The notes under the pieces are model-generated. The model did no database searches, was not told where the DNA came from, and saw only the letters and a list, made by a program, of their open reading frames with translations. The translations under genes were made by a program, and so were the position numbers. Positions 43,569 to 50,491 of a stretch of DNA of 64,000 nucleotides are shown here, piece after piece (the first letter of the stretch is position 1; each line of letters starts with the position of its first letter). The stretch lies in the sequence record OQ411014.1; one strand, 5' to 3'.

Positions 43569-45713
43569 ATGCTTACAATCAAGAATATTACAATGAGAAA
43601 CTTTTTCTCCTTTGGGAATGCACCACAGACTGTAGTACTGGATAGTACTGATATATCCTTAGTTCTGGGTCAGAACAATGATGTACTTCTCGATGGAGCA
43701 GACAATTCCGGTCGTCGTAATGGGGTGGGTAAATCTGCCCTCATTCAAGGCATCGTATATGGTCTGTATGGTAAAAGTATCGGTAATGATATCAAGATTT
43801 CTAACTTGGTGAATAAAATCAACACTAAGAACTGTGAAGTATTCTTAGAGTTCAGTAAAGATGGTGTTGATTATCGAGTTGAGCGTGGGCGTAGCCCAAC
43901 GTATTTCAACTTCATCACCATGAATCAGGATAAAGCTGATGATGAATCTCGTGGTGAGAAGAAAGATACCCAAGAAGATCTAATTGAAGTTCTTGGTATC
44001 TCGCAACAATTGTTTGAACACATTGTAGTACTGAATGCTAACGTTGAGCCGTTCTTGTCATTGCCTGTTATCAAACAGCGTGATATGATTGAAGAACTTC
44101 TTGGTATTACTCAACTAACCGAGAAAGCTGAACTACTAAAGGACATGCATAAAGAATCGAAACGTCAAGCTGAACAAGAAAAGTTCAAGATTGAAACTAT
44201 TACTGCTTCGAACGAGCGTATCCAGCAGAGTATTTCTATTCTCCAGGATCAAGCCGCTGCGTTTGAGAAAGCTAAGTCTGAAAAGATTGATAGTATCCAA
44301 TCTAAGCTGGTGGATTTTGAGGGAGTTGATTTTGCTAACTTATTTGAAGTTGCGACTAAGAATGAGATGGCTAAACAATGTAATGCAGACAGAGCAGTTC
44401 TTGAAGGTCGAGTGAATACACTTGCTCAGAAATATCAAGACTACGATGCACAGTTAGTTGCAAATAAAGAGTTGATTCAACAAAGCATCCAAGAATTGAA
44501 CACTATTGACATTGTTCAGGAATTGAGTAACCACAATGAATTATCTTCGTGGTTAGAATTGGAGAAGATTCTAAAAGAATCATTGAGTACTAAGAAATTC
44601 AAGGAACAACAGATCAGTACTGCTGAACGTAACTTGAATATGCTAAAAAGTACTTTAGCAAAAGAAGAAAGTTCACTCCAAGATGTTCTTGATAACAAAT
44701 GTTCTCTATGTAAGGGTAATCTAGACCATGATGAAAATCATAAAACTCTAAAAGAGAAAGTACTAAGTTCGATTCAATCACTAAAGGAAGAGATTTCAGT
44801 TGTGGAATTGCAGATTAGTGCAACCGTAGCAGAAATTGATGCTTTGGAGATATTTGACTTGCCAGCTAAACCAGTTACAGTGTATCCTACATTGTCTGGT
44901 GCACAACTTCATGAACATAAACTAGCTGAATTAGTAAAACAGTTAGATGAAGTACAGGTCAATATCTATGAAGAAGAGTTACAGAATTCATATGCTAAGT
45001 TAGCAGAGACACCAGTACTGGAAGTACTAGATTGGTATAGTGTTCAAGAAGTTACTGAATTGAATTTCATGTTCGATGGACTAAAGTCTGATTTAGAACG
45101 AGAAATGAAGTCTGAGAATCACTTCGTATCTCAAATTGAGACACTAAAAACTACATCTCTACAAGCTGTATCGTATGATGAGTTCAATGAGTTCGATAAG
45201 TTGGCTAATCACCAAGAATTCTTGGCTAAATTGCTAATCAATAAGGACTCTTATGTTCGTAAACGTATCATTGAACAGAATATCTCGTTCTTGAATACAC
45301 GTTTACAGTACTATATCGATGCTGTTGGTTCATCTCATCAGGTAGTATTCATGAATGACCTAAGTGTTGATATTACATTGAATGACCAGACCTATGACTT
45401 CAAACAATTGTCTCGTGGTGAGCGTACTAGGGTTAACATTGCGTTATCCTTAGCATTCCGTGATACCTATGAGTCTCTATACCAAGCAATTAACCTCATT
45501 TGTATTGATGAGATGATTGATGTTGGTCTTGATAGTTCTGGTGTAATGAAAACGTGGACAATATTCCAAGATCTTGCAGCTATTCGTAACAAGAACGTAT
45601 TTGTCATCTCTCATAGAGAGGAATTACTCAGTAAAACTGACAAGATACTCAAGATTACGAAAGAAGCTGGATTTAGTTCAGTTGCTTATACAACATTGGA
45701 TGATTTTTTCTAA
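43569..45713 (+). CDS. gp46: Recombination ATPase subunit (Rad50/SbcC-like)
   Basis: Walker A NGVGKS, coiled coil with CSLC zinc hook, signature LSRGE, Walker B IDEMID, H-loop VISH. Confidence 0.93.
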   Translation: MLTIKNITMRNFFSFGNAPQTVVLDSTDISLVLGQNNDVLLDGADNSGRRNGVGKSALIQGIVYGLYGKSIGNDIKISNLVNKINTKNCEVFLEFSKDGVDYRVERGRSPTYFNFITMNQDKADDESRGEKKDTQEDLIEVLGISQQLFEHIVVLNANVEPFLSLPVIKQRDMIEELLGITQLTEKAELLKDMHKESKRQAEQEKFKIETITASNERIQQSISILQDQAAAFEKAKSEKIDSIQSKLVDFEGVDFANLFEVATKNEMAKQCNADRAVLEGRVNTLAQKYQDYDAQLVANKELIQQSIQELNTIDIVQELSNHNELSSWLELEKILKESLSTKKFKEQQISTAERNLNMLKSTLAKEESSLQDVLDNKCSLCKGNLDHDENHKTLKEKVLSSIQSLKEEISVVELQISATVAEIDALEIFDLPAKPVTVYPTLSGAQLHEHKLAELVKQLDEVQVNIYEEELQNSYAKLAETPVLEVLDWYSVQEVTELNFMFDGLKSDLEREMKSENHFVSQIETLKTTSLQAVSYDEFNEFDKLANHQEFLAKLLINKDSYVRKRIIEQNISFLNTRLQYYIDAVGSSHQVVFMNDLSVDITLNDQTYDFKQLSRGERTRVNIALSLAFRDTYESLYQAINLICIDEMIDVGLDSSGVMKTWTIFQDLAAIRNKNVFVISHREELLSKTDKILKITKEAGFSSVAYTTLDDFF

Positions 45714-46506: not shown

Positions 46507-46950
46507 ACAAGTTCATAAGGTCAGTTTTTACTGATACAGATTAAACCCAATTCACTCGAAAATGTAGAGGATGGATGAGTAGACTTATGACTACGTAGTG
46601 CAAAAGAAACCCGTTAGGAGATGGCATAGTTTGTACCACCCACGGCAATGTGGCACTTTAAATGAACGCGATAAGCAGACAGACGTTCACTAGATAGACA
46701 TATAAGGCTACCTTACCACACTTGCTAAGGGAGTTCAGTTCAGAACTTGTTTTGAGCTTGAACAGCATTAAGATTCGATTGTATGGATTTTAATGTATGC
46801 GTACTAAGACTACGACCGTTGCACATGACCGTGATAGAGAGAAACAGAGCAACCCGCTTTCGTTCTGACTTGTTCAGAAATTCACGATACAATAATTCCG
46901 ATGCTATCAGCGTCAAGCAATATTTCAGATCCTTAATTGGGTCTTTTTTA
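46507..46950 (+). ncRNA. Candidate structured non-coding RNA (~440 nt), family unrecognised
   Basis: Bounded by the conserved promoter and a terminator-like gatcc-ttaatt-gggtc-tttttt; several hairpins found by eye (46734-46762, 46765-46796, 46865-46879); no convincing ORF. Confidence 0.45.
46927..46950 (+). terminator. Probable terminator of the non-coding transcript
   Basis: agatcc-ttaatt-gggtct followed by a T-tract. Confidence 0.6.
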
Positions 46951-47179
46951 TTGTCTTCATTCCCCTGCGGGGGGATGAAATTGCCTCAACAAATCTCGTC
47001 AAGTATTAAAGTATTAATTAGTTCTTAATAATTAAATTATTAAATGAATTGAGATTCATTAGAGTGAAACGAAGTGAACGATAAATGAATTGAAGATTCT
47101 TAGACAATCGAAGATTGGCTAATCAAATACTTTCTCCTAAAGAATGATTCAATAATAATTCTTAATGAATTTTAAATAC

Positions 47180-47205
47180 AAAAAAAACCAGCAACAATGT
47201 GCTGG
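47180..47205 (-). terminator. Terminator after the gp26/gp51-like pair
   Basis: Minus strand reads ccagca-cattgt-tgctgg-tttttttt. Confidence 0.8.
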
Positions 47206-47415
47206 CTATTGATTCATTTTCTTCATTCTTTTGTTATACGACTTCACCATTAAATCCCTTGTCTGTACTGGCATATTCAGTAATGACTCATAGGAAGTGT
47301 TCTCTATAGCAACAGCAGCATCCATCAATGACACCTGAATGTCATTGACATTAAACTCCATATCACTTAGAATCTCTTTTATTTCTTCCGGTTCACTAAT
47401 GAGAAGTCTAGTCCG
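47206..47415 (-). CDS. Short gp51-like ORF in the -1 frame of the gp26-like gene (probable frameshift extension)
   Basis: RTRLLISEPEEIKEIL...YESLLNMPVQTRDLMVKSY resembles short ORFs that follow gp26 in T4-like phages; the frame is open from the slippery T-TTT-TTC. Confidence 0.55.
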   Translation of the reverse strand, partial: RTRLLISEPEEIKEILSDMEFNVNDIQVSLMDAAVAIENTSYESLLNMPVQTRDLMVKSYNKRMKKMNQ

Positions 47416-48245
47416 AAAAAATGGGATGGGTCGTATTTTAGTCCAGTCAATTCCCACTGATGATTACAGTTACTACATTCAACATCCATAGTATGACTGA
47501 TACCTACATCAAATACACTATCAGACTTTTCACTAATGATTTTGAGATCATTCTTGTTCAAAGTACCAAGCCATTCAGAAATAAATTCTGGTTCAGTTAC
47601 TTCTTCATCATTAGGAGTGACTATCTTCGCAATACTACTGCAAATCATATCATAGTTCAGTTGAGTCATTTTCTCAAAAATGTCACTGAAAATTTCCATT
47701 CTTTCTTTCTCTTCCAAATCAGCACTCATATCAATAACACGAGAACGACTTTGTTGAGCAAACATACGCTCACCAAAAGCAGAATGCTCTTCCCATGTAT
47801 GTGGTCTAAAGTATACTGTTAGTCCATTTTCCATTAGTACTACAGGCTCTTCAGTAAATGAAGTAGTAGTATTGAGTAGATAGTTCAAATCACGACTAAA
47901 TCCACCCACATGTTCACACTCTGGACATGTAACATTGATATCATATGATTCATCTTTAGTAGCTAATTTAATAGCAATAAGTAGTTGCTCTACGTCGTTT
48001 ACATAGAGTTTAGAAGCATCAAGTACTGAAGGGACACAGTTCTCAATTACTTTAGCAATGGCATCACCACCAATTAGTGCATCAGCAGTATTAAGTAGAA
48101 TTTCATCACGTGCAGAACGAGCACATACACCACACTTAGTATTACTTACTACACCTTCAGGGTACTTGATTACATCGTTTGAAACTAGTTTAGTGAACAG
48201 TACTTCAATTTTACTGTACTGTGACAAAGGGTTCATCTTGCTCAT
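47379..48245 (-). CDS. gp26: Baseplate hub assembly protein, T4 gp26-like
   Basis: NPLSQY, ARDEILL...ALIGG.AI..VIENCVP, DVEQLLIAIKLAT, and two CxxC pairs (CPEC, CSNC). Confidence 0.75.
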   Translation of the reverse strand: MSKMNPLSQYSKIEVLFTKLVSNDVIKYPEGVVSNTKCGVCARSARDEILLNTADALIGGDAIAKVIENCVPSVLDASKLYVNDVEQLLIAIKLATKDESYDINVTCPECEHVGGFSRDLNYLLNTTTSFTEEPVVLMENGLTVYFRPHTWEEHSAFGERMFAQQSRSRVIDMSADLEEKERMEIFSDIFEKMTQLNYDMICSSIAKIVTPNDEEVTEPEFISEWLGTLNKNDLKIISEKSDSVFDVGISHTMDVECSNCNHQWELTGLKYDPSHFFGLDFSLVNRKK

Positions 48246-48298: not shown

Positions 48299-50491
48299 AT
48301 GGCAATTTCACAGAGTGATTACTTATTGCAAGAGATGTTGAATAAATCATCCAGTGCAAATGATAATCTTAGTGCTATGCGTGATTTGCTCATAGAACTG
48401 AATAAAAACGTTAAAAAAGGGTCAAGTAACTCACCTGGGAGTGGTGGTGGCGGTGGTTCTGGTGGTGGCGGCAGCGGCAGTTCTGATAGTAATGGAGCAG
48501 ATCCGAAGAAGTACTCAAACATGTTTAAACAGATGTTCGGTAATATGAGAGGGGCCGGAAACACCATACTTGGAAACAACGGAAATGCTGCTAACGTAAT
48601 GGGTTCACTAGGAACTACAGCAACTGGCCTTGCATCGTCATTAGGTAGGGCAATTCCAGTAGTTGGTGGGGTAACTCAAGCATTTACATTATTAGTAGAC
48701 GCTGGAATGGCAGTTTACAACTATATGAATGCTCAGTTGGAGATGTATAATGAGTTAAACAGTTCAGGTTTGACACTTGCAACTGGTATGAGTACGCTAG
48801 AACGTGCTTCTGCTAAGAGTTTGATGAGTAATGCAGAATTTGGTGAAGCATTGAAACGAAACTCTGACGTTTTAGCAGCTATGGAAGGTCAATATGGTCA
48901 TGGTGTTGAAGGTTTTGGTAATTTATTGAATACAGTTCAGAAATTGCAATCAGTTAACGGTCTATATGGTGTTTCTCAACAACAATTAGCTGATATGGCA
49001 GCAAGAAACTTCAAATATCAGAAATTATATGGCACACAAGAGTCATTACGCTCTGCTGCACAGGCTCAAAGTACTGATCTCTTTGTTCGTCAGATGACTT
49101 CATTGAGTAAGAGTGTTGGTAAGAGTGTTGACCAACTATTAGGTAATTTTGAGAACCTAACTGACAGTTTTGACAGTCAAACAAACGCCCGTTCATTGGA
49201 ACGTTTCTGGGGTCTATCAACAGACCAAGCGGCTGATGTAAACAAGGCAATGAACACTGTTTATGCTAGTTTAGGTGAAGTTGGTGTTAAGTTGCAAGCA
49301 GCAAACACTATGAAAATGTCCCAACAGCCATTGACTGAAGAATTTAATAACTTTTTTACACAAATGTTAACCGATAGAATGCGTGAAATACAACGTGCTG
49401 GTGTAAAAGATCCGAAACAAATACAGAAATATCTATCTGACTATATAAAATCTCATCAAAAGCAATTGCAGCTTGAAATTGATGCACAATATGATGCAAA
49501 AAATATACCAGCAGCAAAATTCCTTGAAGATTTGCGTAATTCAATGCAAATGTTGAACGAAAATACTTCTGATGTTAGTCCAGTAATGGAAGAATTTACA
49601 AATAGATTCAATACATGGCTACAAGACTCAGTAACTGGACCATTTAAAACTATGTGGGCTGATACACGTGATAGTGCATTGCGTTATTTGATGGATACAT
49701 ATGATTCAGTTGACAGTATATTCATGATGCCAGCACAAATGATGAAAGATTTGTTATCATATATAACTGAAGGTATGGGAGGAATGGGAACTCTGTTCTT
49801 AGGACTACCAGGACAACTGATGGATATAATTACAACAAACTTTGGTCCTGTTAAGGAAGCATTTGGTAAATTCATGGGTGATTTGATGGATATCCCAGGT
49901 CGATTGGGTGAATTCCTATGGGGAATGCTCACTGGTGATGGTTTATCTAAGAGTGCTGAGGGTCTTCAGAAGACAATTAATAGTCTATTTGGTCATATTA
50001 CTGAGATGTTTGACGGTATTATGGATTTAGAATTCAATTATGATGACATGAAAGAGAAAGTACTGGGTGTTTTCCAATCAATGAAGGATAAATTATCTGG
50101 AATTTGGGATAGTGCTAAGTCATGGATTATGGGTGACGACAAAAAAACACCAGAACCTAGTAAAAAATCCAAAACTGAAAAACTTTCAGAGAAAAATAAG
50201 ACAGAAACTAAAGCACCAACGCCTCCACCTACTAGTGTTGAGAAGAAACATCAAACAGCACAGGTAACGGAACCTCCACAATATACAAAACCTGAGAAAA
50301 TTGAGAAGGTAGAGAAGGAAGTAGCACCAGTAATGGATGTTGCTAACAATCAAGCGACGCTAGAAGAGAGCATTTTAAAAACACTAAATAATCTCATGAG
50401 TGTTGCAGAACAAACTAACCAAATCAATAATAACGCTGGCATGTATCTACGTCAAATCGCAGAAAACACCGCTGGTGCACAGAATGTATAA
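48299..50491 (+). CDS. Tape-measure-like / baseplate hub protein (gp29-like)
   Basis: 730 aa, helical and Ala/Gly/Met-rich with periodic aromatics; divergent from the gp26-like gene; late-promoter-like CATAAATA at 48259-48266. Confidence 0.55.
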   Translation: MAISQSDYLLQEMLNKSSSANDNLSAMRDLLIELNKNVKKGSSNSPGSGGGGGSGGGGSGSSDSNGADPKKYSNMFKQMFGNMRGAGNTILGNNGNAANVMGSLGTTATGLASSLGRAIPVVGGVTQAFTLLVDAGMAVYNYMNAQLEMYNELNSSGLTLATGMSTLERASAKSLMSNAEFGEALKRNSDVLAAMEGQYGHGVEGFGNLLNTVQKLQSVNGLYGVSQQQLADMAARNFKYQKLYGTQESLRSAAQAQSTDLFVRQMTSLSKSVGKSVDQLLGNFENLTDSFDSQTNARSLERFWGLSTDQAADVNKAMNTVYASLGEVGVKLQAANTMKMSQQPLTEEFNNFFTQMLTDRMREIQRAGVKDPKQIQKYLSDYIKSHQKQLQLEIDAQYDAKNIPAAKFLEDLRNSMQMLNENTSDVSPVMEEFTNRFNTWLQDSVTGPFKTMWADTRDSALRYLMDTYDSVDSIFMMPAQMMKDLLSYITEGMGGMGTLFLGLPGQLMDIITTNFGPVKEAFGKFMGDLMDIPGRLGEFLWGMLTGDGLSKSAEGLQKTINSLFGHITEMFDGIMDLEFNYDDMKEKVLGVFQSMKDKLSGIWDSAKSWIMGDDKKTPEPSKKSKTEKLSEKNKTETKAPTPPPTSVEKKHQTAQVTEPPQYTKPEKIEKVEKEVAPVMDVANNQATLEESILKTLNNLMSVAEQTNQINNNAGMYLRQIAENTAGAQNV

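Follow-up and report, generated by a model that had tools for sequence, protein, structure and literature searches.

The DNA analysed here, a stretch of 64,000 nucleotides referred to below as the window, matches Escherichia phage EJP2 (OQ411014.1) at 100% identity; this phage, of the genus Asteriusvirus, is a RaK2-like jumbo myovirus with a genome of 349 kb. On its minus strand it carries a gene for a 288-amino-acid (aa) protein of the T4 gp26/gp51 family (Pfam PF12322), with a slippery heptamer shortly before the stop codon and a second reading frame open in −1 behind it. For this gene, the mechanism is predicted to be a conserved programmed −1 ribosomal frameshift, by which one gene would give a short and a long isoform; we put the probability of this reading, drawn from sequence comparison, at about 0.82. 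The features of the locus are collected in Table 1.

The gp26-like gene of EJP2 and its two reading frames

The minus-strand codons at the site are CAT TTT TTC GGA, followed by 10 sense codons and the stop. In the −1 frame the site reads TTT TTT CGG, that is, two Phe codons and then 69 open codons up to the TAG at 47208-47206. Two products with a common N-terminus are predicted from these frames, a short form of 288 aa and a long form of 346 aa (by arithmetic, 277 + 69). An earlier reading made from the sequence alone, called the sequence-only reading below, had placed an in-phase T_TTT_TTC at 47421-47415 (−), 11 codons before the stop, and had derived products of 288 and about 346 aa from a −1 frame open for 69 more codons; the minus-strand codons and the frame arithmetic bear out both points, and all other facts stated in that reading proved correct as well. 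The QKK-type ending of the 0-frame tail is the PEEI motif of the −1 frame, described below, read one base later. In the AlphaFold2 model, the predicted local distance difference test score (pLDDT) falls below 50 at residues 280-288, and the 0-frame tail is disordered by prediction.

Table 1. Coordinates of the features discussed, in positions of the window.
Feature	Position	Strand	Description
0-frame gene, short form	47379..48245	−	288 aa; PF12322, T4_baseplate family
Slippery heptamer T_TTT_TTC	47415..47421	−	In phase X_XXY_YYZ; proposed −1 ribosomal frameshift site
0-frame tail past the slip site	47379..47414	−	11 sense codons and stop; disordered by prediction
−1 frame extension	47206..47415	−	69 codons and TAG; C-terminal domain of the predicted long form
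730-aa neighbour, probable tail tape-measure protein	48299..50491	+	PHROGs and length match
Intrinsic terminator	47176..47207	−	8-bp stem, loop of 6, T run; begins at the −1 open reading frame stop codon

The 288-aa protein matched PF12322 over residues 17-269 (1.5e-25, 90.6 bits against a cut-off of 24.5), its sole Pfam match, and was assigned to phrog_150 (baseplate hub). Four Cys in two distant CxxC pairs and the Phe-Phe at residues 276-277 are invariant. The AlphaFold2 model of the short form had a pLDDT of 84.8 and a predicted template modelling score (pTM) of 0.82. A search of BFVD with this fold gave a top match at E = 6.7e-24 with a template modelling (TM) score of 0.83 and 70 matches at E <= 0.001; the names of many are baseplate hub assembly protein or chaperone, and the matches are to predicted proteins of this T4-like type from many large myoviruses. 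In the PDB, sequence searches with the 288-aa protein gave no match, and the fold search of the short form reached a best E of 0.33 at TM 0.12, with no link to solved tail assembly chaperones (TACs). No TAC family of Pfam matched the 288-aa protein either, and in NCBIfam no family model matched either piece; weak zinc-binding motifs were all that appeared.

The two predicted products may be missing from virions. The CBB virion mass-spectrometry table, in the part that is shown, passes from CBB_247 directly to CBB_251 and has no CBB_250. The CBB GenBank record names the gp26-like protein "structural protein".

The gp26-like gene is misnamed in several public sources (L014:1501-2376 and L004:1501-2331; proteins P0024, P0052, P0090 and P0113). 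In the record of Yersinia phage fHe-Yen9-04 it is called "Lead, cadmium, zinc and mercury transporting ATPase", in the WPEC5 record it is called "portal protein", and among the JGI names are "Mu Com", "NrdR family" and "ribosomal protein S27E". Its four-Cys zinc-ribbon-like motif is the probable source of the names that refer to zinc proteins.

The −1 piece belongs to phrog_18291 (unknown function) at 7.3e-23 and was modelled by AlphaFold2 as a helical hairpin with a pLDDT of 83.2. A fold search with this model found its own orthologues only and no gp51-like proteins. A word-based protein search gave a single match, since such short open reading frames (ORFs) are seldom called, and an exhaustive profile search of 1.84 billion representative proteins gave 216 matches, nearly all of them ORFs of 44-122 aa.

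Conservation of the proposed slip site and of the −1 frame in relatives

The comparison was performed on 88 loci with a complete gene end, made up of 20 GenBank relatives (RaK2, 121Q, CBB, GAP32, Serratia phage BF, Xanthomonas phages XaC1, XbC2 and Xoo-sp13, a Vibrio phage, Atu_ph07, PA5oct, Phosso, SCTP-2 and others) and 68 IMG/VR loci. The GenBank relatives span down to 23% protein identity, and the 88 loci fall into 15 clusters at 40% identity and 31 at 70%. A tblastn search with a distant family member stayed inside the jumbo clade and reached no T4-likes or cyanophages.

In all 88 loci, an in-phase slippery heptamer was observed at the same invariant Phe-Phe (76 TTTTTTC, 11 TTTTTTT and 1 AAATTTT), a 0-frame stop followed 1-11 codons past the site after a tail of variable length, and the −1 frame was open for 69-79 codons. 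T stands immediately before the Phe codons in 21/21, even though the residue whose codon it closes varies (H, S, N, R, Y, D or A). TTT likewise encodes the first Phe in 21/21, whereas its share in the rest of these genes is 63%. Judged from these sequences, the heptamer, its phase and the open −1 frame are conserved beyond coding needs, with synonymous positions fixed. The sequence-only reading had named conservation of TTTTTTC and of the −1 phase in gp26 homologues as one check on its proposal, and a slippery heptamer in that phase is present in every locus.

The −1 frame opens merely 0-3 codons ahead of the heptamer in 67/88 loci. Thirty −1 pieces align essentially gap-free, starting with the first codon past the heptamer, and their best-conserved motif, R-x-[RK]-L-L ... 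P-E-E-I, stands at the very start. Members with a 0-frame stop one codon past the site still have the PEEI motif in the −1 frame, indicating that selection acts on the −1 frame.

Natural in-frame counterparts of the predicted long form were also found. Four of the profile matches to the −1 piece are proteins of 331-346 aa (P0315, P0323, P0335 and P0341), all of them PF12322 members with the −1-type domain fused in frame at the C-terminus (at an E of about 1e-6 over the entire library). At the junction these proteins read x-F-[RK]-x-K-[LI], and the DNA there contains no T run longer than 4, indicating that these long forms are not assembly errors. In 3/3 contigs with context (L095, L096 and L097), the long gene is preceded in tandem by a shorter PF12322 paralogue with 27-30% identity to it, which ends a few residues past the equivalent Phe; in L097, the genes divergent from the tandem pair encode a large protein of 843 aa and a T4-type portal, the arrangement also seen in EJP2. 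Among the 120 matches listed for close homologues of the EJP2 288-aa protein none exceeds 301 aa, so the two parts were never fused inside the frameshifting clade as far as those matches reach.

Two of the three tandem short paralogues have an in-phase T-rich heptamer near the stop (L095:1689-1695 and L096:2771-2777; TTTTTTC and TTTTTTA), at the position of the EJP2 slip site. In L095, the −1 frame after the heptamer stops almost immediately, as read by eye from the junction DNA. These heptamers are possibly relics of a frameshifting ancestor. The T4-type portal gene of the third contig (L097:1-1142, 1011 aa) has a weak intein-splicing Pfam match between two portal matches, which suggests that it may be interrupted by an intein.

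The EJP2 sequence by itself is no more than chance. In the window, TTTTTTC occurs 12 times against 19.2 expected from shuffles, and among the 55 in-phase X_XXY_YYZ heptamers in its long ORFs, 2 have a −1 frame open for at least 30 codons past the stop. The weight of the evidence comes from the relatives, and the significance of the site follows from its conservation in them and not from the EJP2 genome alone.

A second in-phase TTTTTTC lies at 45704-45710 (+), at the extreme end of the gp46/SbcC-like gene (…DDFF and stop), and is followed by a −1 frame of 68 open codons, which crosses the endonuclease VII gene in antisense. Only the closest relative, Erwinia phage Hallingskeid, retains this heptamer, and it is gone in 121Q-type and other relatives. 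As a programmed slip site it was rejected as chance because of this loss, and for the same reason it serves as a negative control.

Three other explanations were weighed against a programmed −1 ribosomal frameshift. The heptamer is common in this AT-rich genome, and the window holds one other in-phase heptamer with a long −1 ORF, as would be expected if the arrangement at the gp26-like gene were a chance ORF, a pseudogene or a homopolymer sequencing error without function; this is already refuted by the comparative data, in which the same architecture recurs in 88 independently sequenced loci of wide divergence, the −1 piece has its own PHROG and many profile matches, and the control heptamer is lost. 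Two independent genes, with the short ORF translated alone by coupling or re-initiation (for example from the ATG at 47361) and no fusion protein, is how the 21 public records present the locus where they do not omit the short ORF, and EJP2 does have an ATG 20 codons past the site, as many relatives have some start codon. This arrangement is very unlikely, however. Nineteen of the 88 loci, including RaK2 and PA5oct, lack any −1-frame ATG, GTG or TTG between the point where that frame opens and 30 codons past the site, and elsewhere the candidate starts lie at non-conserved positions that differ between relatives (+3, +4, +7, +14, +20 and +22), mostly downstream of the R-x-[RK]-L-L motif. In addition, where a record annotates a downstream ORF, this ORF lies in the −1 frame (19/19), the heptamer is fixed at synonymous sites, and in the profile search the −1-type domain occurs only as a C-terminal extension of PF12322 proteins or as a −1 ORF. 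As far as start codons can tell, independent initiation is excluded as the conserved mechanism. The proposal of the sequence-only reading, one frameshifted chaperone gene and not two independent genes, is strongly supported by the constant site, phase and −1 ORF, by the loci without a canonical start and by the natural fusions.

The same long protein could also arise through transcriptional slippage, in which RNA polymerase would add one U on the T run and a minority of mRNAs would carry the extension in frame. The site is indeed a homopolymer (six T in 76 loci, seven in 4, eight in 8), and runs of seven U may cause transcriptional slippage (PMC4066793). In most loci, however, the run is short, exactly six T closed by C, whereas selection for slippage would favour longer runs; it always stands in X_XXY_YYZ phase, and the one locus with A_AAT_TTT fits tRNA re-pairing. 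U_UU.U_UU.C is, moreover, experimentally active as a ribosomal motif (PMC4066793). The constant re-pairing phase together with the six-T run in 76/88 loci favours the ribosomal mechanism, and transcriptional slippage is considered improbable.

Gene neighbourhood and relation to T4 gp26 and gp51

T4 gene 26 has gene 25 after it, and the divergent neighbour is gene 51, which heads the series 51-27-28-29-48-54; gp29 of this series is the tape measure. T4 gp26 (208 aa) matches PF12322 from end to end (215.6 bits), and T4 gp51 (249 aa) matches it over residues 1-201 (177.5 bits) and has a C-terminal tail in addition; the two are paralogous. Both are listed in a T4 review as hub assembly chaperones, gp51 being required although the particle does not contain it (PMC3004832). 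In several records, homologues of gp51 bear the name "assembly catalyst". T4 gp26 ends three residues past its Phe-Phe, encoded by the non-slippery TTC TTT, and the gp51 tail comes after a nearly invariant Phe and begins K-L-L-x-x-P-D-E-[VI].

The gp51-family tails were aligned with the −1 pieces by hhalign with a score of 22.3 (P = 3e-4), whereas 30 controls with shuffled columns scored 9.3 +/- 2.1 and never above 15.0, and no other segment of gp51 exceeded 13.6. An end-to-end alignment of the natural long forms and the gp51 family reached a global P of 4e-5 and placed gp51 residues 195-249 opposite the C-terminal domain of the long forms. Homology of the −1 piece to the gp51 tail is likely, on the strength of these alignments, but unproven. 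The architectural parallel is plain: T4 has a short and a long form of one family, as is predicted for EJP2-type phages, gp26 matching the short form and gp51 the long form with its K/R-L-L ... P-D/E-E-I/V tail, and the genes adjoin a tape-measure-like gene in EJP2 and the operon with the tape measure gp29 in T4. Unlike the single gene of EJP2, the T4 forms are encoded by two separate, divergently transcribed paralogous genes with no slip site. The expression "downstream gp51-like ORF" used in the sequence-only reading needs to be corrected, since gp51 is itself a full PF12322 paralogue and the short ORF corresponds at most to its C-terminal tail of about 49 residues; the counterpart of gp51 is the whole predicted frameshift product and not the short ORF.

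In the window, the neighbours of the 288-aa gene are gp47- and gp46-like recombination nuclease genes and an endonuclease VII gene, and divergent from it lie the 730-aa gene and then a T4-type portal gene. The divergent layout of the 288-aa gene and the tape-measure-like gene is common to most relatives. The 730-aa neighbour is a probable tail tape-measure protein and a likely chaperone client. It matches phrog_14121 (virion structural protein) at 6.6e-208 and, weakly, tape-measure PHROGs (9.8e-6 and 2.7e-4), and its ruler length, 730 aa x 0.15 nm = 110 nm, compares with a measured tail of 111.1 nm. Its CBB homologue is abundant in virions, where 29 of its peptides were detected, the RaK2 record mentions tape-measure similarity for the homologue, and the PA5oct record carries a remark on electrospray ionization tandem mass spectrometry (ESI-MS/MS) for the 730-aa homologue alone and none for the gp26-like protein. 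The 730-aa neighbour had no Pfam match, and its similarity to T4 gp29 was weak. In the EJP2 paper (PMC10213699), the 111-nm tail is "non-contractile" in the abstract and contractile in the results, and the phage is described as a myovirus.

On the other side, the terminator at the −1 ORF stop codon marks the end of the transcription unit; three terminator-like sites were found against 0.3 expected. Just downstream of it, a non-coding stretch at 46900-47060 (−) shows 84-86% identity across dozens of jumbo phages in which the flanking proteins are merely about 55-60% identical. Within it lie two −35-like boxes of the TTGAC type and two invariant hairpins, in which a single pair covaries, and scans of the stretch for tRNAs and against Rfam gave no match. 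It is probably a conserved promoter/terminator block.

Proposed mechanism and comparison with known systems

According to the proposed mechanism, most ribosomes would read the PF12322 gene to the 0-frame stop and make the 288-aa short form, and a minority would slip back one base on U_UUU_UUC, where both tRNAs can re-pair on UUU UUU, and read the 69 further codons. The resulting 346-aa form would share the first 277 residues and add a small helical C-terminal domain. Both forms jointly may act as non-virion assembly chaperones for the baseplate hub and the tape measure, in the manner of T4 gp26 (short) and gp51 (long, needed catalytically), and the extra domain may recruit a partner out of reach of the short form, as the T part of lambda gpGT does. 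A chaperone role of the two forms on the tape measure is held with less confidence than the frameshift itself, and is moderately favoured.

Downstream RNA structure was sought and gave 0 consensus pairs in 27 sequences and a single-sequence z of −1.06. Since no RNA stimulator appears to be needed for slipping, the long form is probably a minor product. In E. coli, frameshifting above 0.1% occurs at U_UU.U_UU.C and U_UU.U_UU.U in the absence of stimulators; H_HH.U_UU.Y belongs to the most efficient heptamer classes, and insertion sequence (IS) elements use U_UU.U_UU.C (PMC4066793). In lambda, G and GT are made at about 30:1 (PMC5009743). With this motif active without stimulators and a known pair made in such a ratio, low-level slipping to a minor long form is plausible.

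Several points weigh against this reading or parts of it. Transcriptional slippage would give an identical long protein, and sequence cannot separate the two mechanisms. No conserved RNA stimulator was found, and slip efficiency may be low. The tape-measure identity of the 730-aa neighbour depends on weak matches and on length agreement. Support for homology between the −1 piece and the tail of T4 gp51 is modest: searches between gp51 tails and −1 pieces, with hidden Markov models (HMMs) run against single sequences, were not individually significant (best E = 0.16), with weak matches enriched in that search (21/52 matches, against a background of 88/6176 fragments); the fold search of the −1 piece does not confirm it; and there is no precomputed PF28602 (gp51 C-terminal domain) label on the 69-aa ORF and no precomputed Pfam label on the 121Q-type short ORFs. 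Finally, the scan for a second PF12322 paralogue covered the 64-kb window of EJP2.

Among known systems, the closest in operation is the G/GT frameshift chaperone pair described for long-tailed phages (PMC5009743). In lambda gpG/gpGT, as predicted for EJP2, a −1 slip on X_XXY_YYZ a few codons before the stop of the upstream ORF gives products with a common N-terminus, the long form having a small extra C-terminal domain; the gene lies beside the tape-measure gene, there is no strong RNA stimulator, and the EJP2 products may also be absent from virions. EJP2 differs in protein family and fold (PF12322, a four-Cys site and about 280 aa), in layout, its gene being divergent from the tape-measure-like gene whereas lambda G/GT lies between the tube and tape-measure genes on the same strand, and in its client, which may be the hub as much as the tape measure. 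The EJP2 system is analogous to lambda G/GT and not homologous. The comparison with the lambda type made in the sequence-only reading is kept in so far as the two work alike, with a slip, two forms and a position beside a tape-measure-like gene; membership in the same family is not, given that no TAC Pfam family or PDB fold was matched and that the gene is divergent.

The tandem pairs of uncultured phages (L095, L096 and L097) have the same two domains as EJP2, and L097 also has the same synteny, but in them an ordinary in-frame gene encodes the long form and another gene the short one. The IS elements share with EJP2 the U_UU.U_UU.C heptamer, which is experimentally active in E. coli (PMC4066793); most IS sites are accompanied by a stimulator, be it a hairpin, a pseudoknot or a Shine-Dalgarno-like sequence, whereas none is detectable at the EJP2 site.

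The joined product is annotated in 0/21 public records, two of these annotate no downstream ORF, and the short ORFs are "hypothetical" in every source. The literature searched on gp26, gp51 and jumbo phages in connection with frameshifting contained no report of the slip site, and the word frameshift is absent from the EJP2, CBB and PA5oct papers. If the reading is right, the annotation of about a hundred phage genomes would be corrected, in which the long form is missing and the extension is "hypothetical" or uncalled.

In a standard review, conservation of the G-T type frameshift is ascribed to the long-tailed phages "except T4" (PMC5009743). The present comparison indicates that T4-related jumbo phages would use a G-T-like frameshift, and within the gp26/gp51 family itself. 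In a wider proposal, which we hold in even balance, PF12322 (gp26/gp51) would be the tail assembly chaperone of the T4 superfamily and the exception of T4 to the G-T frameshift would be only apparent; the ancestral or alternative state would be one gene with a −1 slip site, as in RaK2-like jumbo phages, and in T4 the pair would come from genes 26 and 51. If true, the "catalytic" gp51, for long without an explanation, would gain a concrete role as a gpGT-like minor form that links the tape measure or the hub to a partner protein. Three natural versions of one solution, a slip site, tandem genes and divergent genes, could then be compared, and the function of gp51 would become directly testable. 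The short/long chaperone principle would have been taken up convergently by an unrelated fold.
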